The position numbers and the translations under genes are program-made. The notes beneath the pieces were generated by a model, which saw only the letters and a list, made by a program, of their open reading frames with translations, made no database searches and was not told the DNA's origin. From Klebsormidium nitens (lineage: Eukaryota; Plantae; Klebsormidiophyceae): DNA of 42,867 nt. Each line of letters begins with the position of its first letter. The stretch's first letter is position 1. Positions 387 through 39,884 of the stretch are shown one piece after another. The stretch spans positions 1 to 42,867 of the forward strand of contig DF237648.1 of NCBI GenBank assembly GCA_000708835.1. The letters run 5' to 3'.

Positions 387-3300
387 ATGGCACGCGCACG
401 AGGGATCGTAGGAGCCGTTGTGCTTGTCCTTACTGCTGCCTTCATCGAAGGTTAGGATGCCGGAAATGAGAGCGGGATTTAGGACCTTTGCAAGGCGCTT
501 TGGGTCCTTTGGGTCATTGAACATTGGGCAGATATGCAAGGCAGCATCTTCGCAGTCAGACAAAGTATCTGATTATCCACCCGTCCACTTCACGACCATC
601 ATGTTGTAATACGCTTTTGTCAGTCCCACCTAAGCTTCTTCATTCTTGCAGCATTTCTCTCTTGCTGTTTACCCTGATTATGGTCAGGAAGTCCGCATTG
701 TGACATCCCGAGTTAGATCGAAGGGAGAAGTAGCTACCCGCAAATTTCCAGGAAGGATATTGACTTTGCAATAAATGCATAAATGCCCTCTTGTTGCCAT
801 CACTTAGGAAAGAATGTTTGGTCAGGTGCAGACTTGGCCAGTTTCGATGAGGTCGCGCCATGTTAAAAACCGTACCGCCAAGGGAATTCGCACCATCTTT
901 GGTGTGAAAACTTAATTTCGTTCATCCTGAGGATTCACCCGGCGCCGTGAAATGGTTTTTTACATTTCACACAAGAGCTTTTTTCGATTTTTCTACACTG
1001 GAAGTCACCAAAATGACCAATGTCTTGAATATTTCATGGTTTCACCTTTTCGCACTCGGGGTCCGACTTAGTTTTCAAATTGCACACCTTCCCCAAAATA
1101 ATCATTTTTGGGTGAATCCCTTGGCGGTACGGAACCTCAAAGGAGGGCCGTAATCACCATCCTTTCTTATCCTGTCAAGTTGTACGAATTCAGAAAGGTC
1201 GCGAACACACACTTTTTCCCGTTGGTTGTCCGTTTGTGGTGCCTGAATGGTATGGGGGGAGACTCTTTCGATGGAATGGCATTATGCAATTGGGACTTGG
1301 CGCCTGATTGGGGCTGGTCCTGCGCAGGTATTGTGGGTGACCACCCCCTCCTGGTGACCAACTGTGAGGAGCTGAGGCAGGCCGTGGGCGCCGCAAGGGC
1401 ACCCACTGATGGGACGCACCCCACAGTCATCCTCACAAACAGCCTCAGCTGCAGGCAAGTGGACTCTTTGGCGGACCAAGATATTACAGCATTGAGATGG
1501 TTGAACAGAAGTTGCTTTTATCGGTGAAGAGCCAAGCGGCAGCGAGTATGCACCCTCACAACCTGATTTCACGGAGGACAGCGTGGCTAGGTTGGGCTAG
1601 TTTGACGCACTTGCCCACCAGATGTCTGAAATCAGGCATGTCGGAAAGCATCAGCAAGCCCCTCCACTGCTATGCTGATTGATCCCCCCGGTCTACGTTC
1701 AGCAACGTGCACGTTGAGTACCCGCTCACGCTGCTGGGGGGGGCGAGCTCGTCTGGAGAAGCAATCACGCTGTCGCGGCGGACTATTGACCACCCCACTC
1801 TCATCATCATCTCCAAGGACGTCACCCTGCGGAGCATACTCTTCAAGGATGCAGGAGGGGTGGTAAGGCAGGCAGAGCCCCTGGCCCGTAGATGTTGTTT
1901 CTAAGCTCTCTCGAATGCATTTTGCCAGAACACGCGGATTTGCTCAAGGTGACAGTCAGTCTGTACACTTGGTTGCATATTGTAGATTGTGAAGGCTGCG
2001 CTGTTCCTTTTTCCATGGACAGTCCCACCATGTTTTAAACAAAGAAAAGCAGTGACGCTTGAAGCTGGCCCATCAGCACTGTCTGTGTGCTCCAGCACAA
2101 AAGTCTGAGCAGAGACTTTGGGTCATCATTGAGTCAAGGCGACTTCCCTCCTGACCCGTCAAACAATGGCCACAGGGTGGTGGGGCGGTGCTGCTATCCA
2201 AGAACGCCAGCGCTGCCATCCATGACGTGACCTTCCAGAACAGCGCCTTTGGGGTGAGTGCTCCGCTATGTGCGTGATGCTTACCCTTGTTTTGGGAGGG
2301 TGCACTTGTTTCCCCAGATTTCATACAGGCCGTCTATTGACCTTTCAGCTCCACAACTCTGTCCTGTTTCCTGGAAATCTTGAAAGTCCTTTTCTGTAAT
2401 CTGGAGACTGGAGAATGGAGCTACTTACTGATACCTTGCCTAAATCGCCTTTGCTGCCAGATCTGGCCTGCGCTAACCATTGAGGGGAAGGCCGAGGTGA
2501 CGAATGTCCTCTTTGAGGACTGTCACTCCAGCGTGAGTATCGATTGCCCTGTTTTCTTCTTTGGTATGCAAACGGTAGGAAGCTACTTTGTGGGGACTTT
2601 GTGTATCTGGACGACTCGAAACTCGAGCCGGCAACATATAATAGACCTTGGAGAGACCAACTGAATTCAGGCTCAGTTCAGTGTTAGTGGCGCATTCGTG
2701 TCCTGTTCCAAATGACGCCTTTATTCAACCAGACGTTTTGGCAACTTGAGACACTGCTTTCCCTGAGCCCAGCGATCCACTCTGCGGAAGTGTCGCTTCA
2801 CTGAGTTTGGAGTTCGATAACACCTGTAACGTGCAATATCCTGCCCGTTCGAGATTCGACATGTAAGCAGTCGTCGACGCTCTTTAGAAAACATATCTAG
2901 CCGAAACAGAAGCACAGAACGATCAAGCAAAGTTGCGGTAGATGAATAACGAAGACTAAATACTAGGATGTACCCACCTCAATCACTGTCCAGGTTTCAG
3001 TGTATCACCCTTTCCCTGACGCCCGTCCTCTCTTTGTGATGCAGGGCGCGGGGGGCGGAGCAGCAGTGCGTTCTTCGGGGTACGCCCGCTTCAAGGACTG
3101 CACCTTCGCCAGGAGCGCCGCCAATGTGAGAGGCACGCGTTGAATATTACGATCAGATCTTGCAAAGTACGCCAGCTTCCAGCACTTGGATTTAGCGATG
3201 TGGCGGGTCTCAACGCAAATCTGCAGTATAAATGCCATGTACTTATGTTGGAGCTTCTCTCTGAATTGGCTGGGCTAGACTTTCCAACTAGATTCCCTCC

Positions 3301-6258
3301 TTGTATACCGCACGCTCAATGCACTTCTTTCGCCAAGGCTCCTGTTTGAACACGGAGACTTCTTACCATCACTCGCAGCTCAGGAGGGGGAGGTCCCAGT
3401 ATCAGCTGCATGTGATCAGAGACCACACTAATGCTTCAAAGTTTCGTGCAAGCAACCATCAGCACAGCAATGTACATCCTCATTCTGTCAGCCTGTCATG
3501 TGCTGACGTGGCGCGTCGTGCAGATGGGAGCTGGGGTGGCCGTGGACGGGTTGGCGCATTTCTGCTCGACGTCCTTCGACGAGAACAAGGCCAAAGTGAG
3601 GCCAGCCGCCAGCTCCCAGGAGTTTCGTCCATACGGGGATGCTGTCCTTCGCAGCGCCCAGCTCCTTGTCAATGAAGTTCTCGGCCTGTTTGTTGCTGTC
3701 GCGCTCCGTTCCTCGAAGCAATAGCCGTGCATTTGGCTGCGTACTAATCAGCTGTCGTGTTGGTCGCAGCATGGCGCGAACGTGTGGGTGCGCGGCGACG
3801 AGCATGACGCAGGGGCCAAAGCATCCTTCTGCTCGGACGCGGCAGGGAGAGGGGCCAGAGCTGCCCCGCTCTTTGGGGGGGCGTCAATTGCGGTGAGGGC
3901 ACCAACAGCCGTGGACTTGTTCTTTGCGTCCAGCGTTGTTTTCACATGTACATCTCGACAATGTAATCGGAAGGTCGATTTGTGCGACGACTCTCTTCGG
4001 CTTGCCTGATGTCGCTTCTGCTGCGGACACACAAGGACAAATTCGATTCCCTGGTGGCCAGCCTGACGTGTGTGCCCCACTGTCCAGGGCGTCGAGAGCG
4101 AGTCGGAGCGGGGCCACATCACACGAGGTGCGCAGGACTGCCTTTTCAGTCACCGCAGCATCGGTTGCCTCTCTCAAAATTGCCGGTTCGAAATAGCAGG
4201 ATCTGCCACTTGTTTGGTTGTTCTTCCAGCGGACAGTTCCCTGGCTGTCACCAGCCCGCCTTTTATGATGTCATGCAGCTTCGCCGTATCAATCATTGTC
4301 AATGACCTGTTGACGGCTTGCAATCTTTCCACAGATTCGTGCGACGCGTGCGCGGAGCCGTTCGTGAAGAGCTTGGCGCTGTTCGAGAGCCGGCGGCGCG
4401 CGCGGGTGCCGCTGCTGGCGTTCCTGAGCCAGGCGCACCTGACGGACCACGAGCTGGGCCGCAAGGCCATCCGGCCCGAGGACGACGCCATCTCAGCACT
4501 GGAGTGCGGGCCAGGCAGCTTTGCGCTCGACGGGGTGTGCGAGCCAGGTGCGAATTTTCAGGTTTTGGGGTTATGGGGATTTGGTTTAAAGGGTTTTTGG
4601 CAGCGCAGAACACCTGGTGTGCCTGGAAGAACCAAGCGCTTTTGTGGTAGAACTCATTCGGGGCGGGGGCTGGAGGAAGGTCGATGAGTGCGCGCTTCTG
4701 CAGCAACAAGGTGGCGCTGAGCATGTTCCCAATTTCTAGCAGATGTGTCCGCTTTGCGATGTTCACGTCATCTCGGTTGTGTCTGGTGTAGGAGTGAAGT
4801 TTACTATCAAAGCGTCGCCTGCTCGAGTGCCGTAAACCAGATTGAAAATCTGCAGCCGAATGAGCTGGCGCTTCCTTCAAGGCCTGCTTGTCCCCTAATA
4901 ACCTCCGCTCTCCTCGTTTGTCGCAGACTGCCTGCCCCAGACCGTGACGGAGAGCGAGGACACGTGGCGTCTTCTGGACCTGGCGGGCGGCGCGCAGCCG
5001 TCGTACACCGTCCGCTTCGAGAACACGTGCGGCAAGACGCTCGAGGCGATTGCGTTTGACTGCGACGGCTTCCCGGGCACCGCCTGGGGCCTCGAGCGCC
5101 ACGGCCGCTTCTGCGTCCTCACCGGCCACGACGACGTCCTAGCAGGTGCCACATGGCCACGACTCCGTGCTTCCACGTCTCAGCCGTCCATGTTTGTGCG
5201 GTCCTGCAGGCGTTTGCTGTGTATCTTCGTCCTTATGAAGCCCAGCAGCACATTGGATTGGATTATTCCTCGCCCTGTCTTGATCCCTCGCCTCGTTCTT
5301 TCTCTCTGTTGAGCCGCCCCGGTTTGCTTCGTTCGTACTGTCCCCTTCAGCGTCTCTTCTACCTCACAGCCACATTGCAGGAAGAGTCCAGGTATCCGGC
5401 CTGGACGCCGTTCTTTCCCCAGGTCGCGCCGATACTTACCAGCTTTTTGAAGATAGGACACAGCTGTACTCTGAATGTGGGCCGCATTCAGCAGAGGCGC
5501 ACTTCTTAGCAGTTTCAACCATATTGCTGCTATTCTCGTTCCTGTGGGCATATGTGGCTTTACCTGCGAAGCACATTACCACAACATAACTCACAGTATT
5601 CACTGCACTTACTGCACACATCCCCACCGCCCCACTCACCCACACGCTCACGGGCCCCGGTTGCTTGCCCCGGCCTCCAGGTCACACTCACGAGTTCCAC
5701 TACACTTCCGCTGCCCCCTTCACGTTCCGCCCGCACAGCGCCCACACGCAGCACTCGACGCTCGTCAAGAGCGGCCGCGACGGCATCGAGGTGGTCAGCC
5801 GGGTGATCCAGACCTGGCGCAAGGCCGACTCGCAAGAGCTGCTGTCGCGGGTCGAGGTGACGGTGAACAATTTGTCGGGGGAGAAGGTCTCGCAAGTGGC
5901 ACTCGACTGCCACGCGTTCGAGCCCGAGTGGTCGATCGACGTAGATAGGAAGGACGGGCGGTGCTTGGTACCGCGCGTGTTGAACCATAACGAGACGCAC
6001 CGCTTTGAATACATCACGGAGGGGGTACGTGCGCATGACGTCAGCATTGCGGAGGTGCGGGGCTCGTACGGGGAGGTTGTGAAGGGGGCGGGCGTGGCGG
6101 GGGGCATGTACACCACGGTCGGGGCCATGTGCATGCTCGTGCTCGTGGCGAGCGCGTCTGTTGGCTGGTATGCGTTTGGGCCCAACAAGGACCGGAGGGC
6201 CGAGGTCTACACACGGATCCTGACACGGGAGAAGACTTTCAAGTTGGCCCAGACATAA
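387..6258 (+). CDS. ~608-aa secreted/type I membrane protein: signal peptide + GGA/FxxN beta-helix-like region + 2 x CBM49-like domains + TM helix + short tail
   Basis: 12 phase-consistent exons: 387-450, 1328-1454 (GC donor), 1703-1862, 2176-2253, 2461-2532, 3045-3125, 3524-3595, 3770-3892, 4088-4127, 4335-4547, 4927-5145, 5681-6258 (1827 nt). N-terminus is MARARGIVGAVVLVLTAAFIEG. Repeats: GGGAVLL..VTFQNS, GGGAAV..FKDCTFARS, GAGVAV..SFDENKA. The modules YTVRFENTCGKTLEAIAFDCDGFPGTAWGLERHG..HTHEFHYTS and VEVTVNNLSGEKVSQVALDCHAFEPEWSI..ETHRFEYIT match the plant GH9C CBM49 pattern (vTNksGKtlknlkl....gplWGL....leFvYi). TM: TVGAMCMLVLVASASVGWYAF. Confidence 0.8.
870..1132. mobile_element. MITE-like insertion (~263 bp) in intron 1 of the CBM49-like gene
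   Basis: Perfect 16-bp terminal inverted repeat CCGTACCGCCAAGGGA (870-885) / TCCCTTGGCGGTACGG (1117-1132), plus an internal copy GGATTCACCC (931-940) that is the reverse complement of 1110-1119. The interior is AT-rich and non-coding. No clear TSD. Confidence 0.6.
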
Positions 6259-7869: not shown

Positions 7870-10800
7870 TCATTTACAGGCCCAGTGCACCTTTTCTGGT
7901 GCAAGCTGATCAAAACTGGGGCTCGCGACCTGCTCACCACTCCTGTCGAGATTGGCCGCAGCTTTCTCCGCCGGACTCGACGTTTCCGGTATGAACACGA
8001 AGGCGCCCGTGAGTGCCCCGGCAGGTTTCCGCTGGACTGTCCCGTCAGGCCGCATCTCGAGGAACGAGGCGGTGGCGGCGATCTTCGTTACCGGAAGGGT
8101 CAACGCAAATTCGGCTAGCTTTGTGCGCGCAAACTCGCGGCGGCGGGAGTCGGCCAGCTCAGTGTACCTGAAACGAAGAAGAAAAGTTCCTTTCTTAGGC
8201 TGAAGTTAGAATGGAATGTTGGGCCGCAAAAGCGGTGTTGCCGATTGAAAACGCGCGTGTTGTCTTGGTAGGAGCCGCCCGGCCGGAGCGAAAAGGTAGT
8301 CTGGGTGCGAATGCTGCGCCCGGGACATTTGCATTAACAACTACGAGGACCGGTTGCTGGAGCAATCAATAGGCTTCTGTTTCGGATCTGCGGAGCCTAG
8401 CCCCATACGAGATCGAGCACGCACTTTCACAGCATGTCTGATACCTTTCAGGGCACGTGCACTTCCATTACATACTTAGGTGTACTGAACTTGGGAACAA
8501 GTGGAACCAAAGATAAGGACGAAAGGCGACAGGGTGTTACCGAGAAGATGTCCACACTTGCTTCAGGTACACTCAGCTTGACAGCGTAAAGCCTCAGGGC
8601 TTGCTAGAGGATTCTTCGTTGACCTCCGAATGAACAACACGGCTCGAGACAGGTTCCACACGCAGTTGCGACGGTCAAGTGAAGTACATTTCATCGAATT
8701 CATCTTATTCGTTTCCTAGTCGAAGGACAACATAACCGCAAGCAACGACGGGCTCACTGGAAGAACGGCTCGTTAGGCTCCTCGGTCAACCGCGCGCTGA
8801 CCGCCGCCAGGTACGCGTCGACCCGCTGTTGGAAGGCAGCTGCATAGTCCGCCTCAGGAATCGCCCAGTTGGCCGCAAACTCGGCCTCCGCGCTGTCTTC
8901 CGGGGCGCCCTTAGCGGCGGCGACAATGGCGGGGGCGAGGAGCGCCTCCAGGTCGCTGCTGCGCGTTGCGGCAGAGTACTGGATCTCGTCGGGCGCGTAC
9001 TGCAAGTCGAGCGCAGACAGTCGGAAACAGACGCATTTTGTTGGTGAAATGTTTCAATTTTCGGTGAGCCGACTCAGAAGGGCCAGACCAACGTATGGCA
9101 CGGAGTCCTTGGCTTCAGCTGCTAAGCAGCAGGTTCAGAAGCGCCGAAGCAGGCAGAGGTGAGTGTCGATCCTTTCCAAAGTCTTCAACGTCCGCAAGCG
9201 CGACTATGTATGCGGGGATGGATCCTCTCAGTTTGCAGCTGTACGGTCAAGAACTGGGGAAACTTGTATTTAGTTCACATTCACGGATTGAAATTGTTTG
9301 TCAGCAACTGGTAGTAGTCAGCCATCACTGTGCCGGTACCTGTTGAACACTGTCACTTCATCTCACGGGTTAACGAAAGCGACCGCCTAAAGCGCGTTGT
9401 TGGGAGGCAAATCCGAGTTGCCTTGAGCGCATTTCAAGAGGAGCTGTGGACGTTCTGGAACGCCGAGTCGTTGGGATGGCGCGCGCGCTTGCCAGCTTAA
9501 CCGTAGTACTTCTTGATTGACCCGGATCGAGGCGGTGCCAATCAGAAGACATGCCGTACCGTTTGTGAAACCTCGACTTGTTCTGTTGAGTATCGCCTGG
9601 AAAGAATAAGTGATGAGGACGGCAAAAAAGATGTCAAAAGATATCAAGGCCCGCTCACTTGGGCGAGCCTCCGCCGGTGGTCCGAGTACACCGGGTTGGC
9701 CAAGTCCACCATCATGAGGCACGCCGCCAGGCGCTTGGTCACTATGCCCCGGTCAATCAGCTGCTGGAGGAGCACGACGTCCTCCTTGGCGGGTGCCGGC
9801 ACGAAGAACGCGAAGAACGTGTCGCCCTTCTGCGCGAACGCGCCCGCCTGCAGCCGGAAGTCGTACCTGCTAGGCAAAAAAACCGGGTTATGAGATATGG
9901 GTAGACCCGCGGTTAGCGGTTTCCCTTAGGGCTGTGTACCCAAACGTCATGCGGGCTGACGGCAATTGCTCAGAGGACGCTTTGTCGATAGTCCAACATA
10001 TGCTGTACTAGCACCAAAACACGTGGAAAGAATTGTTATCATCTAGGATCGTCGGAGCTCTCTGACCTCGTGCTATGCCGAGGGCAGTTCTAGGGAGCTC
10101 TCCAGGCTGTGAGGAAATCCAGTGGTCAAAGGTCAAGAATCTGTCGCAGACACCAATCTACCGCTTCCGTGAATCTGTACAAAGTCTGCCGAAGCGCTTT
10201 TCAGTTTTGAGGACCCTTGCACGGCTTGAAGGTACGCCGCCTGTGAAGCGGTAACAAGTGTCAATGGCTTCTCTTACGTCAAGGCAAAGGCAATAGCGGG
10301 TCGCCCGTGGCAACATTTTGAAAGCGCAGAAGCGCTTTGGTGAAGCGCTCACTCCGTAAGGCTGTCCTGATACTTTTGGTACGACACCCGCAGCTTCGAA
10401 GTGTCCCCCGCCACTATTCCCGCCGCCGATAGGGACTCGATGTCTAGAAAGAAGCCGGGAGGCAGGTCGTATTCGTTCTTCGTGAACCGCTGCTTGCTGC
10501 GCTCGGCGCTGCTTACGAAGTTGACTGTGGCGGTGGCAAGGATCTGCACACGTGGCAGATGAGCATCGAGTTGGTGTCATTTAGCTCTCAACGTCTGACG
10601 TTAGTGAATGACTTACGTCCAAGTCTGCTTCGACGCGACGTAACCAAGCCTGCTCTTTCGAGTTTCTCCCGAAGCACCGAAAGGAAATTGCAGTCGCCAG
10701 AGCACGAATCTGCGCATAAGGCGGATACACTGGAGTCGGCGGTGGTCAATCCGAGTTTGCCAGATGCCTATTAATGAGAATAGGAGTTGTTGACGACTGT

Positions 10801-13800
10801 CTTTCCGAAACCCAGTCAATCAACCGACTCTAGAACCGTCTTTCGTATCTCACTAAAGGTTCTCAAAACCAGGGTGCACCAGCAGCCCTTGTCAAAGTTT
10901 GCACCGAAGCAAGACCTGACCAGCCTTTGTTGATCACAAGAACGGAACCTGCTTCTTCATGAACCACGGCCACTTTGAATGCTTATGGCTGCGCATCACC
11001 GCCCTTGGTGCGGAACGAAGATTTCTAACAGCGTCGAAGTCCCCGTCAGGCCCTGATTGGGACGCCTAAGCTAGCACGACTGCGGGTATGTCGACCCCTC
11101 ACTGGCAAGACGGAACTTGGCCAGTGCCCACCTGATTGATGAGCAGCTTCACTCCGGTGAGTTTCGCCCCTTGGACCAAAGAGTCGATGCGGGCGCTCGT
11201 GAAGCGGTCTATGGCCGGCTGGACCACCAGCGTCTGGAGCTTGTTGGCGACCTCCTGCGCACAGAACACGCCACGTCAGCATGCCCATTCCTCGGATTTA
11301 TGAAGAGCAGGAGTGGTGACTCAGGGATCAACTTAATGAGAACTCGAAAGCGGATATCAATGCTGCCAACCTACCGTATCATATTAACCTGCGAAACGAA
11401 CCCTGCCCTCTCTCCAAGGTAGTGACGGTACTCTTGCAAAGCTGCCGTTTTTGGGCTTACGCGTTCTGACAGTCCACCGGATCCTGCGACCTTCTAACCC
11501 CTGACACGAATTCACGTGTGTCCGCTTGACACGTGCGATTGTAGTAACTCACGCGTGCACGTTTGTTGGATAAAAAACGCTGCGTCCGCTCATATCTCAA
11601 AGTCTGGAAAATCACATTTTGGAAACAGTTGCGTGTCGTGCCTGCTCACCTTGCCCGTAAAGAGGGGGTGAGTCCGCAGGGGGTGGCTGGGCGGCAGCGC
11701 GGTCTCACTTATGCCCGCGACGGAGCTGTGCCAGTTGTTCCAGGGGGGGGTCAGCTCCTTCATCACCAGGTTGCCGTTGACGTGCCCATCGAACGGGCCC
11801 TGCAACCGGGTGGCGGGGTCGAAGGCCATGTGCGACTGCCCCGCCCAGAACCACTCCCCGTTGAGCCTGTGAGGGCAGGCCGGGGGCAAACGTCTCGATA
11901 AGGTCAAAATATGAAGCGACTTGCGGAGGCCAGCTTAGGAGAAATGCGCACCGGTTGGGTGCTTAAAGCACTTTGTACGATCGTAGCAGGTCAGAACAAT
12001 CTTTGGATCATCCGAAGCGGTGCGACGAATCCACGAAGTGACGTGAGAGCTTACTTATTGGGAAATTGCGAGGATGTTTTTTACAGCATGTTGCTTTGAT
12101 ATGAGCCTCCCCTGCGAGCGAGACCCTCCGTCATGCCAGCAAGGCCCAGGGATGCAGCCAGCAAGAAGAGCACTCTTAATCGATCTCGATTCTCGTCTTT
12201 GAACTCGTTTCGTCCTCACTTCCTCTCCTTTACATTTTGATGGAAGCCAAATGCAGAAGCAAACGGATTTAGAAAGTGCCAAGAGCAAGTGATTCACTCG
12301 AACAAGTCCTTTCCCCCTGCTTGTCTCTATCTCACAGGTTAGCAGAGACATCTACACACAGAGGTAACGTTCGTCTTGCTTTGTCTGTCCTTCAAATGTT
12401 TGCTGCTAATCTGGTGCTCTTACAGGAAACAGCAGACTGAAGCTGCAAAAGATGAGCGTCACGATTCACCCAAGGAACCCATCATCAAAGGCCTTGGCAC
12501 CTCCCCACCTTTTATAGAAGTTATATGTCCTGTTTGCAACATCCCACGACGCGCACTGCAGAAAGATTGCATCGTCCGCAAAGCCTAGCGCACTGCCCAC
12601 GACCAGTATGTCGGCCTGGTCCCGGCTCCCAGTTGCGGTACGCGGGAAGCGCACCCACAGAAAGCGGAGCGCACGGTCTAGGTCTTTGGTCTCCTCAGTC
12701 CAACGCATCTGGCCCCCCTCGCCAGCCAGAAAGGTCATGAAATCGAATTTGTCGGCAGGGCTGCGGGAGGAAGCATTGCACGCTTCAGTCCAGGTGACCC
12801 TCTACAAAGTTAGAGTGAGCTCTTGAGGATGAAGAAGCTGGTCGAGCTCCATGCTGCCACTTTTGTGATGACGCAGGAGAACATGCCGAATAGGAGACTG
12901 GATTCACAGCAAGTCAGGAGATGAGAATACGGGAACAGAGCCCTTGCCCGGAGAATTTTGCTGGCATTGCTGGTCCAAAAGGGCCTTCCATTCTCTCGCT
13001 TTACAAGTCGCCTTTTTGATTGCTCATCAGTGTAGTGTATTGATTGCTAGCTTGTGACACGCGTGCAAGTGAAGCAACGTGCTCAGGGTTCTGTCTGTTT
13101 CTCTGATTGTTCCACCCCTCTTTTCACACCTGTGATGAGAAAGACTCTGCCGTTCTCGTGCGCAGCCTGGGAACTATAACAACAACGCATATGTGGGGCT
13201 AATCCTACAAAAGCATCGACAAAATCTTCGCGCTTGACAAAGACAAGGGAAGGGAGATTGAGCCACCTTGCATTGACAATGAACTCCACCGTAGTGTCCA
13301 GGTTCTGCGGCCGCTCGCTTGCTGGCACCAGTTTCAGCATCAGCGCTGCCAATGGGTCTTGCAGCCGGCTGTTGACCTCAGACTCCTGCATTGTGCGCCC
13401 TCGAGTGTCCACTCCCACAACGAACGCCTTGATTGGCTGCAGATAGCGACCATAAGGCTCAGTCCTGGCCGGCGTGTCTTTCTGGCAAGCAGATGGTTTG
13501 CCAGAAAGCTTTAAAGAGCAATCGCAATGCTCTCCGTGGGTTGTTAGCAATCAGGCATGCATTTTCCCTGTGCCCCGCCTCACGTATGAGGAGCTGCCAC
13601 ACACCTTGTGAGCGAGCTGAGAATCAATCAATGCAAACATGGAATCAAGCTGCATTTTTTTCTATGCAGCTGGTCAGGCTTCAGCATCTAGCCCACTCTC
13701 TGAAAACTGCGCACGTGCGCACCCGATGGAGTGGCCTGCAGGTTCTTCTCTAGAATCAAGCCAAGTACAGCTGCCAGCTGTGGCGGAGACATGCGGCCGG

Positions 13801-13957
13801 CACAAGCACCCAGACCCTCAAGCAACCCAGGTCACAGGATGACGCATACATGATTCCTGCGCACCTGCATTGCAGCTGCTTGCGCCCCGCCAATGCTGCC
13901 CATGTTCAATGCTGCAATGTTGTCGCCCGCCGCGGCTTCCATTGGGGTCGCCTGCAT
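7870..13957 (-). CDS. Uncharacterised protein 'B', ~597 aa (GPFDGHVNGNLVMKELTPPWNNWHS motif)
   Basis: 9 phase-consistent exons: 13957-13865, 13436-13267, 12760-12509, 11866-11650, 11254-11132, 10543-10353, 9866-9659, 8999-8758, 8167-7870 (1794 nt). Motif-like segments: FLAGEGGQMRW, FLQCASWD..YNFYKR, WFWAGQS, GPFDGHVNGNLVMKEL..PWNNWHS, GDTFFAFFVP.PAKED, LMMVDLANPVYS.HR, LADSRRREF..LAEFALTLP..LEMRPDGTV. The first exon and the last ~40 codons are less certain. Confidence 0.8.
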
Positions 13958-14786
13958 CTCAATTCCGCTGCAGTCTAGAGCCTGTGCATCGTTGCTGTGA
14001 CTGAAGACTTATATTGGGAGCCTTTCCACGATGGAAATTTCTCTGAGGCGCGCTGGCTAGTCATCAGAGGAGAGGCGCCTACACCACCGGCTTGAATGGA
14101 TCCAGCATTATGCTGAAGCGACTCGTCCGTGCCTCCAGCTGAGAACCTGTGAGCCGGCCTCTTGAGTCTTGTGTTAGGAAATTCCCCAAATTTGAAAGAA
14201 GCGCCATAGCGGCCCTGAAACGTCCACCCTGCAGTTGACTTTTCAGTGCAGCGCTCAATACGGTACATGGCCCATGGCATGGGCCTCCCATGTGGGCCTA
14301 TCCATAGTGCATTATGCACCAGGCTCCAGCCTCAGGCTCCAGCACTGAGCACTCCCTCGGGCCTCGGGAGTCGGCGGTTTCTACCGGCAGCCGCCTAGAT
14401 TGGCGGCCGACAGCTAGTGAGTGCGCGGGAGAGCTTTCCGATCGAGTGGCCTGACCTATCAAATGAGTGGGCGGCCAGCTAGTTAGCGGCTGCAGGCTGA
14501 GAACTTGAAGTTGCAGCCATGCACTGATGCAGTGCGTCCAAGCTGCAAGAACACTCAAGATCTGGACTGCACTGCCAAGGCGCCAACTTGCGCGTTGCCA
14601 TGTGGCTCTCATGCTGCCCTGTCCTCTGGGGGATGAAAGATACAAGTCAACGTACCATCATGATACTCCATGGGGAATTTTGACATACTTTATCTCAGCA
14701 ATTGGCAGGGTTGACCACCTTCTGATTCTGAGCAACATTTCAATCAAAGCAGAGTTTTCAGCTCGCTGATCTTCAACATCTCCGCA
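13958..14786. promoter_or_regulatory. Putative bidirectional promoter between genes B and A
   Basis: ~830 bp between divergent start codons. It contains three GGCCCA/TGGGCC (site II-like) hexamers and four short inverted repeats at 14269-14407, near the midpoint, and a TATAAG on the minus strand near 14010. Confidence 0.5.
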
Positions 14787-17700
14787 ATGGCACACGCCAG
14801 GGGCTCTCAAGCTGCTTGCAGATCACTGCACGGATGCCCAGCGACCACTGCTGGGCTTGCGAGCGCTCAATCTACACCACAAGCGACAAGAACGGCCTTT
14901 TCTGCACATAGCCCACAAGCTTTCTTGGGACTGCGGGGCCCGGCGGCGTTCCCAGGTCAATATGTGCAAGCGAGGGACTTGCAGCGCTCATGTCAGCTTC
15001 TCCCTTCGCCAAATCTGCTCAGCCATCAGCAGCCTCCAGCAAGGAAGTGCTCCATTGAGTCACGCGGTCTCCCTGGAGTGTGCCGCGCAGCTGCAACAGG
15101 TGCCCCGTCGGCCGTGCCCCCCAGATCCCCGTACTTTGACCCTCCCGGCTTTGTGGATGACCTGACGTCTGCGGCTGAGAAGAGGCAAGTCGTATGAATC
15201 TTGAGCTATGCAATCTGCATGACCTTCACATGCTTTCAGTTATACTGCTTTCAATCAATGCTGCTTTCAATCATTCAGTTGATGAGATTCCGAATGCGTC
15301 TTGTTGTAGGCTGCTGCGTCTTGCTTTCGTCCCCAATGCTGCTGTCCTCCGTGGTTTCGAGCTTCAGAGGCAGGACTCTTTCATACATTGCATTTGAGGC
15401 TTCTTGGTCAGGATGACAACGCTTGGGACAGGGAATCGGCGCAGGTCTAAAAGCCTAGTTTTCTTGGCTGGAAACTGAGCTCATTCTGAGGCTTGCTTAG
15501 CCATTGAGGTGTTAGAGCAACAGGTTGACCTCTTCTCTTGCCAAGCTTTAGCCAACAGCTCTTTCAAGCCCGATTTTGTTCCAAGGGGGGCCCGCTCCTC
15601 TCATATACAACCCCCTGCGCAGGGGCTGGAGCGATTGGATCAGCCGCCAGATGGACCGCGCAGTCAAAGGCACTCCCTCACGGAACGACGGCCCCCGCCG
15701 CCAGTTCCTGAACCCCAGCAAGCCGAGTACCCCGCTGGTTGAGCCAGTCACATACAAGGACATCTCCTGGACGGCATTCCCGCGCCAGGTCGATGTGGAC
15801 ACAGGGTCCGACAGTGCCAGGTGGGGGGAGCTGAAGGCGTGTTTCCAAGGAGTCTTTTGCCCCATGTACTGAATTCCGTCAGTATTGCATCTTGCAATTG
15901 CAATTGCATTTCGCAAGGCATTGCTTCACACTCCACCTTGCCCAGGGGGACTGCCGTACGCAATGTTCAGCTTGCAGATTGGAAGAGTTGTCTCTACCTC
16001 TCCCAACCTCCTCCCCTCATTCTGGAGGTCAATAACGCTGTGCAATTGCTCCAGTTCTGGGGCTTTCTTTTCCTTTTGAGGTGTGTTTTAGGGCCGCAGG
16101 TGGGGCCCTTGCTGGCCTCTCCAAAGGAGCTTAAGAGTCCCGAGCTTCTTCCTTCTCATACATGCTGTGTGATTGAAAGTAAGGACTGGGCTGCTCTGAT
16201 GGTTATCCCCCAACTTTTGGCATCTGTAGTTGGCTCGGGCATTTTTGTCGGACACCCAGCCACGCTCGGTTGCAATGAACCAACAAAACTTTGACTACCA
16301 TTCCCCAAAAGCCCGCAGAATCTGCACCAGATCTCTGGACTTGCGAGATCAAACCACGGTGTCAAAAGTTGTTCAGCCTGGGGCACAGCCTCCTCCTCTC
16401 ATGGGTTTGTGTTGAGGGTCCTGCGAGATTAGAATCTTTTTCATTCTGCTGAAGTTGTGCCCTTCTTTGCTCCCTTTTCTTTCTGTCCACTTACTTTTGC
16501 AACCGCCTGATGGCGAATGCATCATGCGACTTTGTGGCCTATGCAAGCTGGACGGAGGTAAGAAGATCCCTGATAAAACTGGTTGAACACCCAAAGCGAG
16601 CAGCCTACTGAGAGATGTGATCACGCACCAGAAGTGTACACTTCCAAAATTTGGCTCGGCTGAAATGCTTCACGGGCGGGGTCTTGGCAGGTGGGCTGCC
16701 GCCGACAAGTCGCGTGACGTACAGGACGAGTACTGCGAGTGGAGCGTCACGCGGGACCCCGTCAGCAAACTCATCACAAAGGTAAGGCTGCTCAACGGCC
16801 ACAACAGGCTGGCATCGTTTTGAGGACAGGAGCAAAGAGGTACATGCCAAGGCAAGGGCGATGGCATTGCCGGTAGGCACCAGGGTGCATCCTGAGTTGA
16901 TTGGTAAAGTGCTCGCTCCATCTCGGTGCCTAGAATGGGGGCCAAAACAACTTTCAGTCGAGTTCGTAAAACACAGAAAATTACCTGCACTCAAAGGCGT
17001 GGAACACTACCTATGTGACATGAGGCCGTCAAGCCATTGCAGCCGCGCCGTGACTTACTTTTCTTCCAACCAACCTACAGCGTAGAAACCTTTGTCGTTC
17101 TTAGTGCACTCTTCTAATGGGTCAGCAGAGTCAACAAGGGGTAGGGGTCACCCGTATTAGCTGCCTGCAGGTCACGTTCACAAGCGAGGGTCCCGAGTAC
17201 TGGGACTACCTGGCGTCCGTGAATCCGGACAAGGTGCTCGCGCTGTACCAGCAGCACATCAGCGCTGACGTCAAGAAGGCCGACTTGTTCGACACGGAGG
17301 GGAATTACAACCGGCGGAACAAGTGGAATTCAACCACCACGCGTGGCGCTATGCACCTGATTCAGGACAGCAACTCCCTAAGCGCTGAGATCGAACTCGC
17401 AGGGGGGTCGAGGTGAGAAGACCGCGACGGGAAGGTCGTTGTAGTGTACATAGGAACACTGCTTTGAACCGTGCTTCGTAACTCGACATTTAAGCGTCGA
17501 CTCACCGTAGGCGTTCAGGAAAAAAGCAGTTAATCTGACGTTGACACAGGAGTTAGAAGCGGATTGTTTCGATGATGAGCACGTAGCCTTGTGCTGGGTT
17601 CCAACTTTGTGGAGTGTTGGGACGGTCTGATCTGGATTGAAAGGGGGGGTCACGCACTCGAGGCAGCAAGCCATCTGAGCTTTGCCCCTCACGCTAACCA

Positions 17701-20296
17701 CTTCTTAAAACCGTTGTCAGATTGCAACGGAACGTGGAACTTTTGGCAAGCAACCCCAAATGTTCATGGATTCACCAACACAGTATCGTCGTCTTCTCGG
17801 TGCCGATATTTTCATGCGTTGAGCTTACCGACGACTTTCCCTTCTTCGCCGGCTGTAAATGCGTGTTCCCTGCTCCTTTTGAGAACCCGCGTTCTCTATC
17901 GACCTCAGCTTGGATATACTGCATCGCTCGTTCTTTGATTGTTCGAACCACATGGCGATGCAAGAGTCAAGGACGCTTTCAAATCTACGAGCTTTTCGAA
18001 CCAACCTCCGCTACAAAGGGATGACTCTGAAAGGTTGTTCGGCTGAAACGTACGGCCCGACAATCTCCTTCGTAACCTTTCGCAGTCTGCTTCTCGTTGC
18101 AAGTGCCAATGCCTTCACTTGTTTTCCTTGCCAACGCGTGGGAGTAAACCAAGTTGTGCCTCGAAGATGTCGCGTCGATCGATCACCTGATCCAGTCACT
18201 GCTCACCCCTTGCACTCACAGCATCGTCCGGACATCCGATGGGCAGATCCTGGAAGACAGTCAGGATCTTATCCAGTGCGGCCAGTACGGCGCACCCGGG
18301 CGCAACTCGGACCCCCACATCGGCTCCGAGGTCAACGCGCTCGCGCGCGCCAACGCGGTGAGCGCTACCTCTTTGTTCCGTTTACTGTTAACCGAGTTTT
18401 CCCAGTTTCTGCTGTTAGAGATCGAGTTGAATACTTGACTGCAACCATTCGAGTAGCCGGCGACAGCTGGCAGACAGCCGACTGCAGCACCCTGGTTCCA
18501 TTGGCTGCGCAACCTGGGTGTCTTCATGCACCACCGCAATCTGTCCGCTGGAATGGCCTCGTTGGCTGACCCCGCAGAACGCTGCAGTAGCGCAATCTGC
18601 TCGGCTGTATCATCAATTGAGTCGGTCTGCTCGGGTGTATCATCAATTGAGTCGGTCAGCGGCATCGGCAAGTTTACTCGCCCCTTTCAAGCAGTGTTTC
18701 TGACTAGCTGCCCTTGCCAACCCAGAGCCTACCAGAGAGGGGTTCACATTGTACATACTTTATTCAATTCGGGTCGCTTCGATTCGTGAGTGCTGCCTCA
18801 ATCCGCTGACGTCACGGGGTCAAATCGAGGCAACTCGACTTGGATTCACATTGGCAATACTATATCGTTGCCTCAATACGAAACCTCAGTCGTTTCGGTC
18901 GGTGGTTGTAACTTTGTAAAGTAGAGACTCACCTTAAAACTCAGCCGTCCAACTTACCACGCTAACGTGGTTTAAGGCACCTTTTCAGCGAGTCGGGGGT
19001 GCGTACCCCAATTCGAGTTGCTTCAATTCCGAGTTGAGGCAAAGCCGAGCGATGCCGGATTGAAGCATATGAATTGGGCCCTTTCTATGCTGACGTCTGC
19101 CTGCGAAAGCGTACTAATGACATCGTGAAGCGCGAACTGAAGCAAAAGTTGTCGAACGGGGTTGCCACCGTTGTGACGCCCCCTCTTCCCCCCGCAGTTC
19201 CTGACGCTCAAGAACCCGGTGGCGCTGTACATCGACGGCCTGGACGCGTCCACGTGGACCACGCCGGACGGCACGGACGCGCAGTCCTTCTGGAAGGTGA
19301 CACGTGGCGCCCCTGGGCTCGCCCTCCGGGCGGTTTACGAGGTGCCCAAAGACAAGGGCTACACCGTCGGGGAGATACAGACGGCGCGCGGACAGTGAGC
19401 ACCGGGCCGCACTGTGCTTCGAGCACATTAGTCAGCCTTCATGGCGGCAGTGTCAACCGAGTGACAACCCGAGCCGCTCTTCTGTTCTACTGCCCCGGGA
19501 GATGGATTTTTCTTCTTCTTTTCTCAAGGGCCTGATCTTTTAGCAATACTAAAGTAAAGGTGCATACAGACGGTGATTCGGGCCTGCCAAAGTGCCCAAT
19601 CATATCGAACAGCAATCGGCTGGGAGCTTGAAGGGACTAACGAGAAGAAGCAAACCACCCGGGGTCTTGATGTAGCTTCGTTTGCCAGACCGGGCGTTTT
19701 CATACTCTGTCACACGTTGAGGCGCTCGATTCTTGAGCTTCTGCACGAGTAGACGAGGGAAGTGCAAACATGCACCTTTCTTCACTTGCTTTGCTCTCGC
19801 TTCGACCAGACGACCAGAAGGGGTGACTCCGCTGACGTTGGCCCATCATGTGGATGCACTCCAGCAGTGGCGCGGTCTCAACGGGTTCCCGGTTCCTTAC
19901 TTGTCCCCCTGCTCTCGCGGCGGTGCGCTTGATGGAGTTGCGTAGACTCAGCGGCCCGTCAAGTCTGTCCGAGTTGGGCAGCCAGCTCCGCTCTGCCTGT
20001 TCCAATCCTTCCCAACTCCTGTCGCCAACAGTTCAAACGAAGCTTCAAGGAATCGGGGCCTCACTAGTCGGCGCTTCTCGCGGATCCTACCGTCTTGACA
20101 GGGCACGCGACGCTCCAGTACAAATTGCAGTGCCCATCGGAGTGCCCGGGTGGACTTTGACCTGGCTGTGGCCTGCTCTTGCAGGAGGATCGAATACGGC
20201 GCCCAGATCGCGGACTTCATCCAGATCCGCCTCACCGGCGCCGCGTGCCGCATCGGTGAGGCGAACTTTGAGCCGGTGGAAGGCTGCGTGGGCTGA
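14787..20296 (+). CDS. Uncharacterised protein 'A', ~457 aa, with ~100-aa plastid-transit-peptide-like N-terminus (QDEYCEW/EGPEYW/GAMHL/RNSDPHIG motifs)
   Basis: 7 phase-consistent exons: 14787-15184 (GC donor AG|GCAAGT), 15623-15820, 16691-16781, 17171-17412, 18222-18357, 19198-19394, 20185-20296 (1374 nt). The mature part reads FDPPGFVDDL..GWSDWIS..QFLNP..ISWTAFPR..RDVQDEYCEWSVTRD..KVTFTSEGPEYW..NRRNKWN..GAMHLIQDSNSLSAEIELA..CGQYGAPGRNSDPHIG..IEYGAQIADFI. Confidence 0.85.
18596..18657. repeat. 30-bp tandem duplication (2 copies, 1 mismatch) in intron 5 of gene A
   Basis: TCTGCTCGGCTGTATCATCAATTGAGTCGG followed by TCTGCTCGGGTGTATCATCAATTGAGTCGG. Confidence 0.9.
18765..19078. repeat. Cluster of degenerate ~20-bp direct and inverted repeats (CAATTCGAGTTGCyTCAAT) in intron 5 of gene A
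   Basis: Copies at 18765-18784 (+), ~18824-18843 (-), partial ~18866-18878 (+), 19009-19028 (+) and 19059-19078 (-). Confidence 0.55.
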
Positions 20297-21713: not shown

Positions 21714-24527
21714 TCACGAGACCGACAGCACCTGTTGGGCGGTCCAGGTCTGCCCCGGTTGCAGCGTGACCGGGTCCCCGACCACCGCCGCTTCCACGCA
21801 CACAAACTGGTGGTACTCCTCGTCGCCCAGGTCAGCGGTCGCCTTGGCCTTCTCAATCCAGGGGTTCCAAACGACTGCACACACAGCGTAACGCCACCAT
21901 TTCTTACCAAGACGATGGCAGCATCTGATGCCAACTTCCCAAGGTAGAAGACCGGTGCGGTAAGCTTGCTTGAAAAGGCTGTCAAAGGTCTCGTGTCTGC
22001 CAATTCAACTAGTAGGCATTTCGAAAATCGTGGCGCGTAGGCGAATCTTACTAGCGTCGGGCAGGCCGGTCTTTTTGAGCGTGATGGTCCTGTTGCCCCG
22101 GTCCACGATCCGCAGCTCGTCCGGCGTGTTCAGGTAGATGCGGTCCACCTGCAGAGCCAACGGGGGATAGTCCTTACCGAGGGGCAGGGAAAGGGCCGAG
22201 CTTGCTCGAAGTCCGAGTCGCTCCGAATGCCCGGCAGTACCTACTGGCCAACGTCACGATTGGTGCCGCCTGAGCTTCCATCCGGAACAACCACGTTCTC
22301 GTGCTGATTGATTGAGCCGGAATTACGGCCGATGCCCTTTCGGGCATCATGTGCAATTTCGTTTTATCGAACGCCTCGCCTGGACGGGTATGATTATCAA
22401 GTGCTGTGGCCGTACCTCTCCCTTGAAGTCGACAGCGCTCCGCTCCTCCTTTTCCTTCCGCCGCGGCGTGACCAGACTCTCCAGGTACTCCAGGCCCTGC
22501 ACGCCCGTTACCTCCACGTTGCTGCACAGCAACAGCGGGCCACCACGTCAAAGAATGCCCCAGCCAGTCTGGAAGGTCCCCGACCTGATTGCCACAAGAG
22601 CGGTTAAATGCGGATCCTGGTAATCTGGCTTCAGGACGATCAAAGAGCGTTCCGGGCCTCCGCAAGCCTCGTTCTGATTGAATAGGATCGGCATGGACAG
22701 TTCCGCCGACCCCGCTATAATCCCGTACTTCCGTCCACACCCTCACTTGCAATAGGCTGCCTCGTATGCAAGTTCAGTCTTGACTCGGGGTTGCACTACA
22801 CCTAAGTAGGAGGAAGCACATTGCCGGGTTCCACCGGGTTCATCGTCAAGGAAAGACAGGCCACTCACGACTATGAAAAGTCGCAAGTCGAAGTCCTCAC
22901 CTGATGTCTGAGACTGCGAAGTAGGTGTGAAGAGCAAATGTGAAGGTGAAGTCCTCGATGCCAATGTTCTTGACGGACGGCTGCACAACCAGATTTCCGT
23001 TCGTGGCAATCTGCACCCGCATCCGCAGCTCAAACCTGCGAGGATGAGTGACGGCAAGTCTAGAGACCAGACGCCAAACCGGTCGCAATTTAAATGATTG
23101 TTTGTCCACGCCGCAAGGAGATGCACGGCCTTAGAGATGAAGTCAAAGGAGCCATCACTGTACGAGTGGCAGTTGACAATCAGCAGAAATCGGTTTGGCT
23201 CTCAGAGGTTCTTCATGTAGCGAACACACCAGTTTAACTACAGAAAACTTTCTTCTGAGCGGACAACTGGGCTACCCGACTTCCATCAAACACAGGGCGA
23301 ATCAAAATTCTTCGTCTATAGAGAGTCTCTGGCAGCGCCAACTCACTTGTGCGGCCACTTCTGGAGCTCCTCCTGGCCTGATCTCAGGAGCAGCGTGAGC
23401 GTCGCTCCGTCCAGGCTCTCCTCGAGCGTGTCCACCGCCCACAGCTGGTTGCGCGCAAAGCCGTGCTGGCCAAGGGGGCCAAAGTCGCTGAACTGGGGGA
23501 AGCACACGGGGATGCCGCCGCGGATGGCCTTGGGGGGCTTGAAGATGGCCTGGACACGGGGGTGGGGAGGAAAGGGAGGGGTGAGGACTCAGCTGGAAGA
23601 GTGGAGTGAGTGCCACTGCAATCAGCACCTCATGTCGTGAGCCATTCTGACATTTGAGGACCATGTTGATTGCGCAAAAGAGCGTAAAACCTTCAAATCA
23701 TGCTTCCACTTGTATGGTAGCACCAAGAAGCAGATGGTTGTGGGCATAAGCCCCAGTCCAGTTGGCTGCTAAGCTGGGAATCTACTAAGCTTAACAAAAC
23801 AAAACAGGGAAATCTGCATAGCAAGGACAGATTGCCCTTACCTTTTCGCTGACGAACAGCAGCTCCTCTTTCTTAGACCCAGACACCCACGACGTCACGT
23901 GACCACCGTGGAGGTAGACCTGGCGTCAAAAAAAGTGGTTCAGGAGGTTGTACGTGCAAGGATGGGTCATCCAGGTCTCTGAACTCTTCAATAAAACATC
24001 CATCAGTGAGACTGCATGATACCAGCCGGACAAATTCGTGTATCTAGAAGATCTTTCCATTTCAAGGGGCAGTACCGTTGGAGTGCATTTGTCCAAAAGT
24101 TCCTACTTGAAGCACAAAGCCTTGCAATCATCTTCTGAAAGAAGTAGCTCAACCCTTCATCTGAGCTGCACCACTGATATGCACTTTTTGATGATATGGA
24201 TTAATCTATACAACTTTTGCTCTCTTCTGTCATCTGTCGCGTGCATCAATCAATCACTGCACATCCGCAGGTGACAATGCAGCTGCATATGATCAGAGGT
24301 TGTTTCATGCTTCTCTAGAACCAACAGTCAGCAAGTCAAGGATCCACGATTAAGGAAGCAAAGCTGCGCGAAGAGACACCCAGCAGGGCACCGCATGCCC
24401 TTGCCGCCGTGTTCATCAACTGATCCAGGCCCACCTCTGCCGTTGTTCCATCTGCGTTCTTCAGGACGGCCTTGTCTAATCCCTCCGTAGACTGCGTGAG
24501 GACAATTGGTTTAGCAGCACCCGCCAT
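21714..24527 (-). CDS. Glucose-6-phosphate 1-epimerase / aldose 1-epimerase family protein, ~290 aa
   Basis: 7 phase-consistent exons: 24527-24435, 23919-23842, 23549-23347, 23035-22901, 22521-22416, 22148-22052, 21874-21714 (873 nt). Family motifs: VYLHGGHVTSW, AIRGGIPVCFPQF, QHGFARN, FALHTYF, EVDRIYL, VVWNPW, FVCVEAA. Confidence 0.93.
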
Positions 24528-39553: not shown

Positions 39554-39884
39554 NNNNNNNNNNNNNNNNNNNNNNNNNNNNNNNNNNNNNNNNNNNNNNN
39601 NNNNNNNNNNNNNNNNNNNNNNNNNNNNNNNNNNNNNNNNNNNNNNNNNNNNNNNNNNNNNNNNNNNNNNNNNNNNNNNNNNNNNNNNNNNNNNNNNNNN
39701 NNNNNNNNNNNNNNNNNNNNNNNNNNNNNNNNNNNNNNNNNNNNNNNNNNNNNNNNNNNNNNNNNNNNNNNNNNNNNNNNNNNNNNNNNNNNNNNNNNNN
39801 NNNNNNNNNNNNNNNNNNNNNNNNNNNNNNNNNNNNNNNNNNNNNNNNNNNNNNNNNNNNNNNNNNNNNNNNNNNNNNNNNNNN
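39554..39884. other. Assembly gap (331 N)
   Basis: Run of n characters. Confidence 1.

Follow-up and report, generated by a model that had tools for sequence, protein, structure and literature searches.

Two intron-rich genes of microbial appearance lie head-to-head in the genome of the streptophyte alga Klebsormidium nitens, and this locus raises the question of where the pair came from, why its members have remained together and what they may do. The pair is located on scaffold DF237648.1 (assembly GCA_000708835.1), which was analysed over its full length of 42,867 nucleotides, referred to below as the window. Gene A, on the plus strand, encodes a protein of 457 amino acid residues, and gene B, on the minus strand, a protein of 597 residues; the two genes diverge from each other, with 830 bp between their start codons. 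In the original prediction, made from the nucleotide sequence, A and B were taken for a microbial gene pair that was acquired together, gained introns and stayed linked under one promoter. The present analysis suggests that they are probably a co-transferred bacterial B-A operon, which was rebuilt in divergent orientation and may represent an undescribed two-protein oxidative system.

The algal gene pair and its bacterial counterparts

The exons of both genes were mapped using plasmid homologs and family hidden Markov models (HMMs) built from database matches, and for each intron the donor/acceptor pair was chosen that kept the frame open and gave the best HMM score (Table 1). The model of A is letter-identical to the deposited protein KFL_006990030, and the deposited B gene, annotated without a Pfam family, equals the model in span and in length. 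RNA contigs from four runs of four studies read, with no mismatches, the B joints 12760/13267 and 13436/13865 and the A joints 15184/15623, 15820/16691, 16781/17171 and 17412/18222, and the loose contig ends of both genes fit the next junction of each. The junctions without direct RNA (A exon 6/7 and B exons 4 to 9) are based on HMM score, canonical sites and the deposited models. Both genes are covered by RNA contigs in all four runs, contig depth not being a measure of expression.

All junctions are of the GT-AG type except that of A intron 1, which is GC-AG (donor GCAAGT) and was read as the same joint in 4/4 RNA runs. Nearly all chosen donors are GTGAGC-type, and the acceptors are CAG with a pyrimidine-rich tract. 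The 14 introns of A and B measure 389-870 bp each, and the GC content is 0.63 in exons versus 0.52 in introns, with a third-position value (GC3) of 0.76-0.79. According to the deposited annotation, the same scaffold carries intron-bearing aldose-epimerase and glycine-decarboxylase P genes. The spliced RNA, the host-type introns and GC content and the plant-type neighbour genes make contamination very unlikely; A and B are truly integrated in the host nuclear genome.

In all four runs the outermost RNA-contig ends lie at 14218-14271 for B and at 14468-14550 for A, leaving a gap of 196-330 bp. Since these roughly 200-330 bp between the two transcripts are without RNA, the gap is a true divergent promoter region. 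The single bidirectional promoter proposed earlier is thus supported by divergent transcripts less than 1 kb apart, both present in 4/4 runs. The other structural details of the original prediction also proved accurate: the protein lengths and the spacing of about 830 bp are exactly those of the HMM-guided models, the splice-site models confirm six introns in A and eight in B, and the motif strings listed at that time are found in open frames of the plus strand (QDEYCEW, EGPEYW, GAMHL and RNSDPHIG of A) and of the minus strand (HVNGNLVMKEL, PWNNWHS, SRRREF and LAEFAL of B).

In bacteria, the homologs of A and B are neighbours as well. A tblastn search with one exon per gene found them as adjacent, co-directional genes in plasmid records of Microvirga, Mesorhizobium, Rhizobium, Bradyrhizobium and Azospirillum, and a B profile matched 180 stretches in a collection with one genome per bacterial species. 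Locus counts were made on the best 80 of these 180 stretches, of which 79 were evaluable and one was cut by a contig end. A and B are same-strand neighbours or fused in all 79: in 76 loci B is followed by A with the HMM-aligned ends 13-122 bp apart, in two both lie in one open reading frame (ORF), and in one A is upstream of B. The last locus belongs to a metagenome-assembled genome of Chlamydiales (L079:5399-8494), where both sequences are on long branches. Further B-A fusions include one on an Azospirillum plasmid and the proteins P0251 and P0272, the latter also containing a PLD part.

The best 80 loci span at least 11 phyla, including Actinomycetota, Pseudomonadota, Acidobacteriota, Myxococcota, Planctomycetota, Nitrospirota, Verrucomicrobiota, Bacteroidota and Chlamydiota. 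No conserved third gene was found near B-A in these 80 loci, and no family recurs there beyond small clades. The linkage in 79/79 loci together with the lack of a conserved third gene indicates that B-A is a self-contained, obligately linked cassette. The original prediction stated that both families occur in bacteria and filamentous fungi and can be neighbours there, which is the case in the 79 bacterial loci and in the fungal loci described below. A ferritin-like partner, mentioned there as well, was not seen among the neighbour ORFs, which were Pfam-scanned in part and with no ferritin-directed search.

Protein A is a full-length member of DUF8225 (PF26676), as follows from the precomputed Pfam match of the deposited protein; a Pfam scan of the window exons, with a library that does not contain PF26676, matched no model to any exon. 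An HMM of 117 members of the A family matches residues 116-456 of the algal protein (E-value 1.1e-163). Of the columns invariant across 55 bacterial members, the alga retains 57 of 57, and of those conserved at 90% or more, 55 of 62. The core residues DEYCEW, EGPEYW, MH and SDP and the C-terminal Cys are all present, and the algal protein ends directly past this invariant Cys. Invariant positions of the family include three Cys residues and numerous Tyr, Trp and His residues. Algal A differs from the bacterial members by an N-terminal extension of 115 residues, absent from bacterial homologs, and by its six introns. A profile built from bacterial B matches residues 28-546 of algal B (E-value 2.5e-157) at 40-42% identity to the bacterial proteins, and the last 50 or so residues of algal B are an extension absent from them.

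A search of protein representatives with A exon 4 as the query returned the deposited K. nitens protein, and the relatives of A were judged on the best 120 matches of A. These are proteins of about 367 residues with 54-61% identity, mostly unnamed metagenome sequences, and the named ones are all bacterial (Vitiosangium, Planctomycetaceae, Pyrinomonadaceae). No plant or algal relative is among the 120, other Klebsormidiophyceae genomes not having been searched. In phylogenetic trees, which were obtained by quick searches and have long branches and midpoint rooting only, algal A (end branch 0.84) and algal B were each placed inside a bacterial set of 44-45 rows, with 99% support in the Shimodaira-Hasegawa-like approximate likelihood ratio test (SH-aLRT). 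This set comprises mixed soil bacteria and excludes a large clade of Streptomyces and Pseudonocardiaceae; any finer placement is without support in both trees. Because the trees are unrooted, the direction of transfer is deduced from the distribution, 180 bacterial stretches in at least 11 phyla versus one alga. The microbial origin assumed in the original prediction agrees with these data, both proteins being closest to bacterial proteins and nested among bacterial sequences.

It is highly probable that the pair came from bacteria in a single event, as judged from the linkage and not from matching sister taxa. The joint acquisition that had been proposed is not proven by such taxa, but it is by far the simplest reading in view of the 79/79 linkage, the position of both proteins in the same non-Streptomyces half of the trees and the absence of plant and algal relatives from the best 120 matches. 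Retained linkage, the other part of that proposal, is true of the proximity of A and B, which are linked in bacteria and in the alga, but not of their orientation, the bacterial pair being co-directional and the algal pair divergent. As the bacterial order is B then A on one strand, one of the genes should have been inverted in the alga. The following sequence of events may be suggested. In the Klebsormidium lineage, a bacterial B-then-A operon would have been integrated into the nuclear genome as a single DNA segment. One gene would then have been inverted, which placed both under a short divergent promoter region that they share, 14 spliceosomal introns would have been gained, and A would have received its transit-peptide-like N-terminal extension, while both genes stayed intact and transcribed.

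Bacterial gene transfer to algae and operon uptake by eukaryotes are both of known kinds, while the movement of a whole bacterial functional unit, as opposed to a single gene, into streptophytes is rarely documented. According to a survey of green-algal gene neighbourhoods, these arose by rearrangement and not by recent transfer of intact clusters (PMC7826186). The new elements in the present case are the B-A module itself, its divergent rebuilding in the alga and in fungi, and the exchange of partners described in the next section. A comparable case is the siderophore operon that yeasts of the Wickerhamiella/Starmerella group reportedly took up, as Kominek et al. are said to have described in 2019. 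There too, a linked bacterial unit resides in a nuclear genome, separately transcribed and still clustered. The algal case differs in having two genes, a streptophyte recipient, 14 introns and a change from co-directional to divergent order.

Partners of the pair and its putative function

A and B are likely to be physically or functionally coupled. This is indicated by their obligate linkage or fusion in bacteria and in three eukaryotic lineages, by the exchange of B for a DyP-type peroxidase and by the fusion of B to tyrosinase, and the unit that they form is probably a complex. The exchange is seen in another branch of the family of A: B is missing there, and A is followed by a DyP-type peroxidase of 520-560 residues. 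Such A-DyP neighbours are found on plasmids of Bacillus thuringiensis, Acaryochloris and Mycetohabitans, and A-DyP fusions exist in both orders. B was also considered as a divergent DyP, and this was rejected: no BLASTP similarity, no Pfam or NCBIfam match and no DyP match in Foldseek or VIA-align were obtained. DyP-type peroxidases have partner systems of their own, such as encapsulin-DyP and EfeUOB. The A family resembles them in that one of its branches has DyP as an obligate neighbour or fusion, and B, with about 550 residues, takes the place of DyP in order and size; unlike in those systems, A is unrelated to encapsulin or EfeO, B is not DyP-like and the algal locus contains no DyP.

The eukaryotic range of B was established by look-ups centred on A. 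In Funneliformis geosporum (Glomeromycota), a B-A fusion of 1047 residues is surrounded by kinase and amylase genes, that is, by a eukaryotic context. In Ilyonectria robusta (Ascomycota), a B homolog lies 1.16 kb from A in divergent orientation. Two other fungal assemblies have a divergent gene next to A that encodes a protein of 1298 or 1401 residues with a Pfam Tyrosinase match; the 5' region of this gene matches the B profile (E-values 1.7e-31 and 1.1e-25). Three fungal loci in all thus have B head-to-head with A, and in two of them B is fused to tyrosinase. In agreement with this, a tyrosinase-named cluster of AlphaFold DB can be aligned with B over its residues 1-586; the entries U4L3E2, Q2GTT9 and A0A175WG83 of that database, which we take to be fungal, were not used as evidence.

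Some tyrosinases depend on accessory proteins or segments, as in the MelC1/MelC2 system of Streptomyces and the latent pro-tyrosinases of fungi. The fungal B is similar to these in being the N-terminal part of the 1298- and 1401-residue Tyrosinase proteins, which lie head-to-head with A. It is dissimilar in that B, at about 550 residues, is unrelated to the small MelC1 caddie, and B of bacteria and of the alga has no tyrosinase attached. In the literature searched, no published function or paper was found for DUF8225/PF26676, for the K. nitens gene identifier or for the tyrosinase and DyP fusions. The pattern of partner swaps points to an undescribed enzyme system, and it makes the pair an unusually clean guilt-by-association case, from which new oxidative enzymology might be uncovered in soil bacteria, in fungi and in a terrestrial alga.

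The wider gene company of the module includes oxidative enzymes as well. When neighbours at distances of up to 7 kb are counted, animal-type haem peroxidases occur at seven of the 80 B-A loci, GMC oxidoreductases at eight, galactose-oxidase-like proteins at three and DyP at two; 15 loci have a neighbour of any of these four classes. In the operon of the closest relative of algal A, a multicopper oxidase gene comes first and an S8 peptidase gene last. The earlier guess of a redox or metal-dependent system fits this company of DyP, tyrosinase, multicopper oxidase, haem peroxidase, GMC and galactose-oxidase-like proteins, the biochemistry being deduced from gene context only. There seems to be an even chance that B-A has an oxidative function of the phenol or peroxide kind. 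In such a system A (DUF8225) would be the constant partner and B would be interchangeable with a DyP-type haem peroxidase. B would supply the oxidising chemistry, a role played elsewhere by DyP and supplemented in fungi by the fused tyrosinase, and the substrates of the pair would be phenolic or aromatic compounds, or else peroxide.

Structures were predicted with AlphaFold2 for a bacterial A (P0172) and a bacterial B (P0078), with plasmid-record rows left out of the alignments, and reached a predicted local distance difference test (pLDDT) score of 87.5 for A and 85.2 for B. The AlphaFold DB relatives of both proteins are uncharacterised, and searches of the ESM Atlas by shape and by features gave no informative match for either. 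The distant fold relatives of B are clusters named 'cytochrome c domain-containing' (E-value about 1e-7, template modelling score 0.45-0.5), and the feature search of the Atlas yielded the same lead. The most conserved segment of B (GPFDSHVNG..MKEL..PW.HWH) is the least confident part of its model, which would fit a loop ordered only with a partner or cofactor. Two AlphaFold DB entries with consecutive accessions, A0A7V9L1M6 and A0A7V9L1M7, are weak fold matches, one to A (E-value 0.09) and the other to B (E-value 7e-8), the B-matching entry carrying a cytochrome c domain annotation; the two might represent an A-like/B-like gene pair of very distant kinship.

A number of results weigh against an oxidative two-protein system. 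A and B give no functional match in Pfam or NCBIfam and carry no known cofactor motif. The Foldseek search of the PDB returned no solved-structure match for either model (all E-values >0.6), the wide fold search with VIA-align gave best Z scores of 3.2 and 3.8, none of them informative, and the comparison of the A and B profiles with PDB sequences came back empty. As there is no cofactor motif, functional family or solved relative, the oxidative function is guilt by association only. Hydrolase neighbours are about as frequent as oxidative ones; they comprise peptidases of the S8, trypsin-like (some with Endonuclease_1), astacin and M4 types, as well as PLD as a fusion partner of A. Many of the Streptomyces loci are closely related, so the neighbour counts are not independent. 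Algal B retains 59 of 69 invariant columns, having lost 10 invariant residues and the N-terminal FPxR motif. Of the two algal proteins, A alone has a transit-like extension, which contains 11 Arg/Lys versus two Asp/Glu and consists to 55% of Ala, Ser, Thr, Pro and Gly. By this composition it looks transit-peptide-like, and organelle targeting of A is conceivable, if somewhat doubtful; a real transit peptide could keep A and B apart in the cell.

A bolder proposal, which we consider unlikely, is that B-A belongs to an unrecognised class of oxidative complexes made of two folds without a solved relative. DUF8225 would have a cofactor derived from Cys, Tyr or Trp, or a new metal site, which B, DyP or B-tyrosinase would install or serve. 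The class would have been domesticated at least twice in eukaryotes, namely in a streptophyte alga and in fungi, each time convergently in a head-to-head arrangement replacing operon co-transcription.

Among the alternatives to an oxidative system, the main one is a conflict system, in which B-A would be a sensor or scaffold core combined with a variable hydrolytic effector (a PLD-type nuclease or phospholipase, subtilase, trypsin-endonuclease, astacin or histidine phosphatase), and of which the alga would have kept only the core. This is quite unlikely. One clade has A-PLD fusions with an S8 peptidase gene upstream, and elsewhere A is fused to an S8 peptidase (P0250) and to a histidine phosphatase (P0244); of these fused domains, PLD matches models of the DrmC type and S8 a PADLOC subtilase model, all of which are generic. 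Genes for S8, for Trypsin_2 with Endonuclease_1 and for astacin are found immediately adjacent on the same strand. Many plasmid copies lie beside insertion sequence elements, toxin-antitoxin pairs or an NB-ARC protein, and the distribution across phyla is patchy. However, the anti-phage defence models of PADLOC match neither A nor B nor the B-A fusion, a hydrolase beside the pair is absent from most of the 80 loci, and the eukaryotic copies have no effector except tyrosinase. The DyP, tyrosinase, multicopper oxidase, GMC and haem-peroxidase partners would also be atypical as defence effectors.

As a narrower version of the oxidative reading, it has also to be considered that the pair might be engaged in cofactor maturation or peptide modification. 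By analogy with MauG and LodB, the invariant Tyr/Cys/Trp cluster of A (DEYCEW) would be cross-linked or converted to a quinone by B, DyP or tyrosinase, or else the pair would cross-link protease-released peptides, similarly to the systems making ribosomally synthesised and post-translationally modified peptides (RiPPs). Protein-derived quinone cofactors are known from pairs such as MauG with methylamine dehydrogenase and LodB with LodA/GoxA. Purely as an analogy, A is likewise rich in Cys, Tyr and Trp and strictly paired, and the distant fold relatives of B have cytochrome c domains. The invariant residues of A in the absence of a cofactor-binding motif, the swapping of its partner among oxidising enzymes, the frequent peptidase neighbours, and the LodA/GoxA pair, radical SAM protein and halogenase near one Bradyrhizobium copy are consistent with this suggestion. 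It is nevertheless improbable, being built on analogy: A and B have no homology to any of these pairs and no sequence or fold similarity to known quinoproteins or maturases, the LodA/GoxA-LodB models of NCBIfam and Pfam match neither protein, no precursor-peptide gene was seen and the alga has two genes only.

Several individual bacterial loci have additional features. In L044:4807-11925 and related Streptomyces loci, a recurrent order of S8 peptidase, B, A and a trypsin-like peptidase-Endonuclease I fusion was observed, the S8 gene recurring in five and the trypsin-endonuclease gene in four. On a Bradyrhizobium barranii plasmid (L007), B-A is flanked on one side by a radical SAM protein and a tryptophan 7-halogenase and on the other by LodA/GoxA with a flavin adenine dinucleotide (FAD) partner (2127-4795 and 10804-13892), with an MBL-fold hydrolase directly 3' of A; this island is suggestive of secondary metabolism. 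On a Microvirga plasmid, the gene that follows the A-PLD fusion (L001:10384-11451) has a weak, sub-threshold match to a viral coat S-domain model (E-value 0.006), which was not seen in other loci.

Fungal copies and other possible origins of the algal pair

The presence of head-to-head copies in fungi raises the possibility that the pair came to the alga from another eukaryote, for example such a fungus, or that A and B arrived in separate events. Some observations run counter to a joint bacterial transfer and partly in favour of this possibility. The three fungal loci share the divergent layout, and a grouping of the A proteins of K. nitens and Funneliformis in one clade is not rejected by the approximately unbiased (AU) test (p 0.45). 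The best relative of A and the best relative of B are on different contigs, the similarity ranks of A and B agree weakly (Spearman 0.30 over 76 loci), and the end branch of algal B is long (1.62). Yet both versions of this alternative are very improbable. Algal A shares 58-61% identity with bacterial A, as compared with 47% for the Funneliformis and 30% for the Ilyonectria homolog, and algal B has no tyrosinase part such as is present in the fungal fusions. That two independent insertions should lie 200-330 bp apart would be very unlikely, since the genes are always neighbours in the donors.

From the identity values, it is most likely that the alga would have acquired the pair independently of the fungi, given that its A is closer to bacterial than to fungal A. 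Independent acquisition would imply that the head-to-head layout is convergent in the alga and in fungi, and fungi with the same layout of the module could then serve as a natural replicate for operon rebuilding. It is extremely improbable that the pair is due to contamination or faulty assembly, or that it is of ancient eukaryotic origin and has descended vertically, with losses in nearly all other lineages, for all that the scaffold is short (42.9 kb), stand-alone and internally gapped and the pair is known in one streptophyte only: spliced transcripts from four independent studies match it at 100% identity, the long introns have host-like donors and the scaffold neighbours are of plant type, while vertical descent would need very many losses and misfits the 58-61% identity to bacteria.

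Feature coordinates and other observations in the window

Table 1. Features of the A and B genes and of the region between them (positions are those of the window)
Feature	Position	Strand	Details
Gene A, coding sequence	14787-20296	+	7 exons, 6 introns, 457 residues; ATG 14787, stop codon 20294-20296
Gene A, extent of transcript seen	14468-20296	+	RNA contigs and HMM-guided model
A N-terminal extension, residues 1-115	14787-15131	+	Absent from bacterial homologs
A coding exon 1	14787-15184	+	GC donor; RNA joint 15182/15621, shiftable by up to 3 bases
A exon 2	15623-15820	+	HMM-guided splicing, RNA contigs
A exon 3 (QDEYCEW motif)	16691-16781	+	HMM-guided splicing, RNA contigs
A exon 4 (EGPEYW and GAMHL motifs)	17171-17412	+	HMM-guided splicing, RNA contigs
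A exon 5 (RNSDPHIG motif)	18222-18357	+	HMM-guided splicing, RNA contigs
A exon 6	19198-19394	+	Loose RNA-contig end at 18357 reads its first bases; HMM-guided splicing
A exon 7 and stop codon	20185-20296	+	HMM-guided splicing, ORF; deposited protein identical
Shared divergent promoter region	14272-14467	.	Gap between outermost transcript-contig ends
Gene B, coding sequence	13957-7870	-	9 exons, 8 introns, 597 residues; ATG 13957, stop codon 7872-7870
Gene B, extent of transcript seen	7870-14271	-	RNA-contig 5' end at 14218-14271
B coding exon 1 (ATG 13957; 5' untranslated region upstream to about 14271)	13865-13957	-	RNA joint 13436/13865, 4 runs; ORF
B exon 2	13267-13436	-	RNA joints 12760/13267 and 13436/13865
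B exon 3	12509-12760	-	RNA coverage 12508-12760, loose end into exon 4; HMM-guided splicing
B exon 4 (most conserved motif of the family, GPFDGHVNGNLVMKEL..PWNNWHS)	11650-11866	-	HMM-guided splicing
B exon 5	11132-11254	-	HMM-guided splicing
B exon 6	10353-10543	-	HMM-guided splicing
B exon 7	9659-9866	-	HMM-guided splicing
B exon 8	8758-8999	-	HMM-guided splicing
B exon 9 and stop codon (7872-7870)	7870-8167	-	HMM-guided splicing, ORF

In the divergent promoter region, a 17-nucleotide direct repeat was detected (GGCCGACAGCTAGTGAG and GGCGGCCAGCTAGTTAG), the copies of which are located at 14405-14421 and 14470-14486, 65 bp apart. It is a candidate for a shared regulatory site; a short repeat in two copies can arise by chance.

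A PLD gene downstream of the pair was also considered and rejected: the tblastn match at 23278-23700 on the plus strand is weak (E-value 0.09) and lies inside the aldose-epimerase gene of the opposite strand. At 39554-39884 the assembly has a gap of 331 N, which explains why one kilobase appears GC-poor (0.327) in the composition profile. Between 35000 and 38000, where no tandem repeats were found, the plus strand is strongly purine-rich, with a GC skew of up to 0.24 and an AT skew of up to 0.34. A sample of this stretch (35901-36200) is rich in AAG/GCC-type codons, and its would-be translation is of low complexity and rich in Lys, Ala and Glu.

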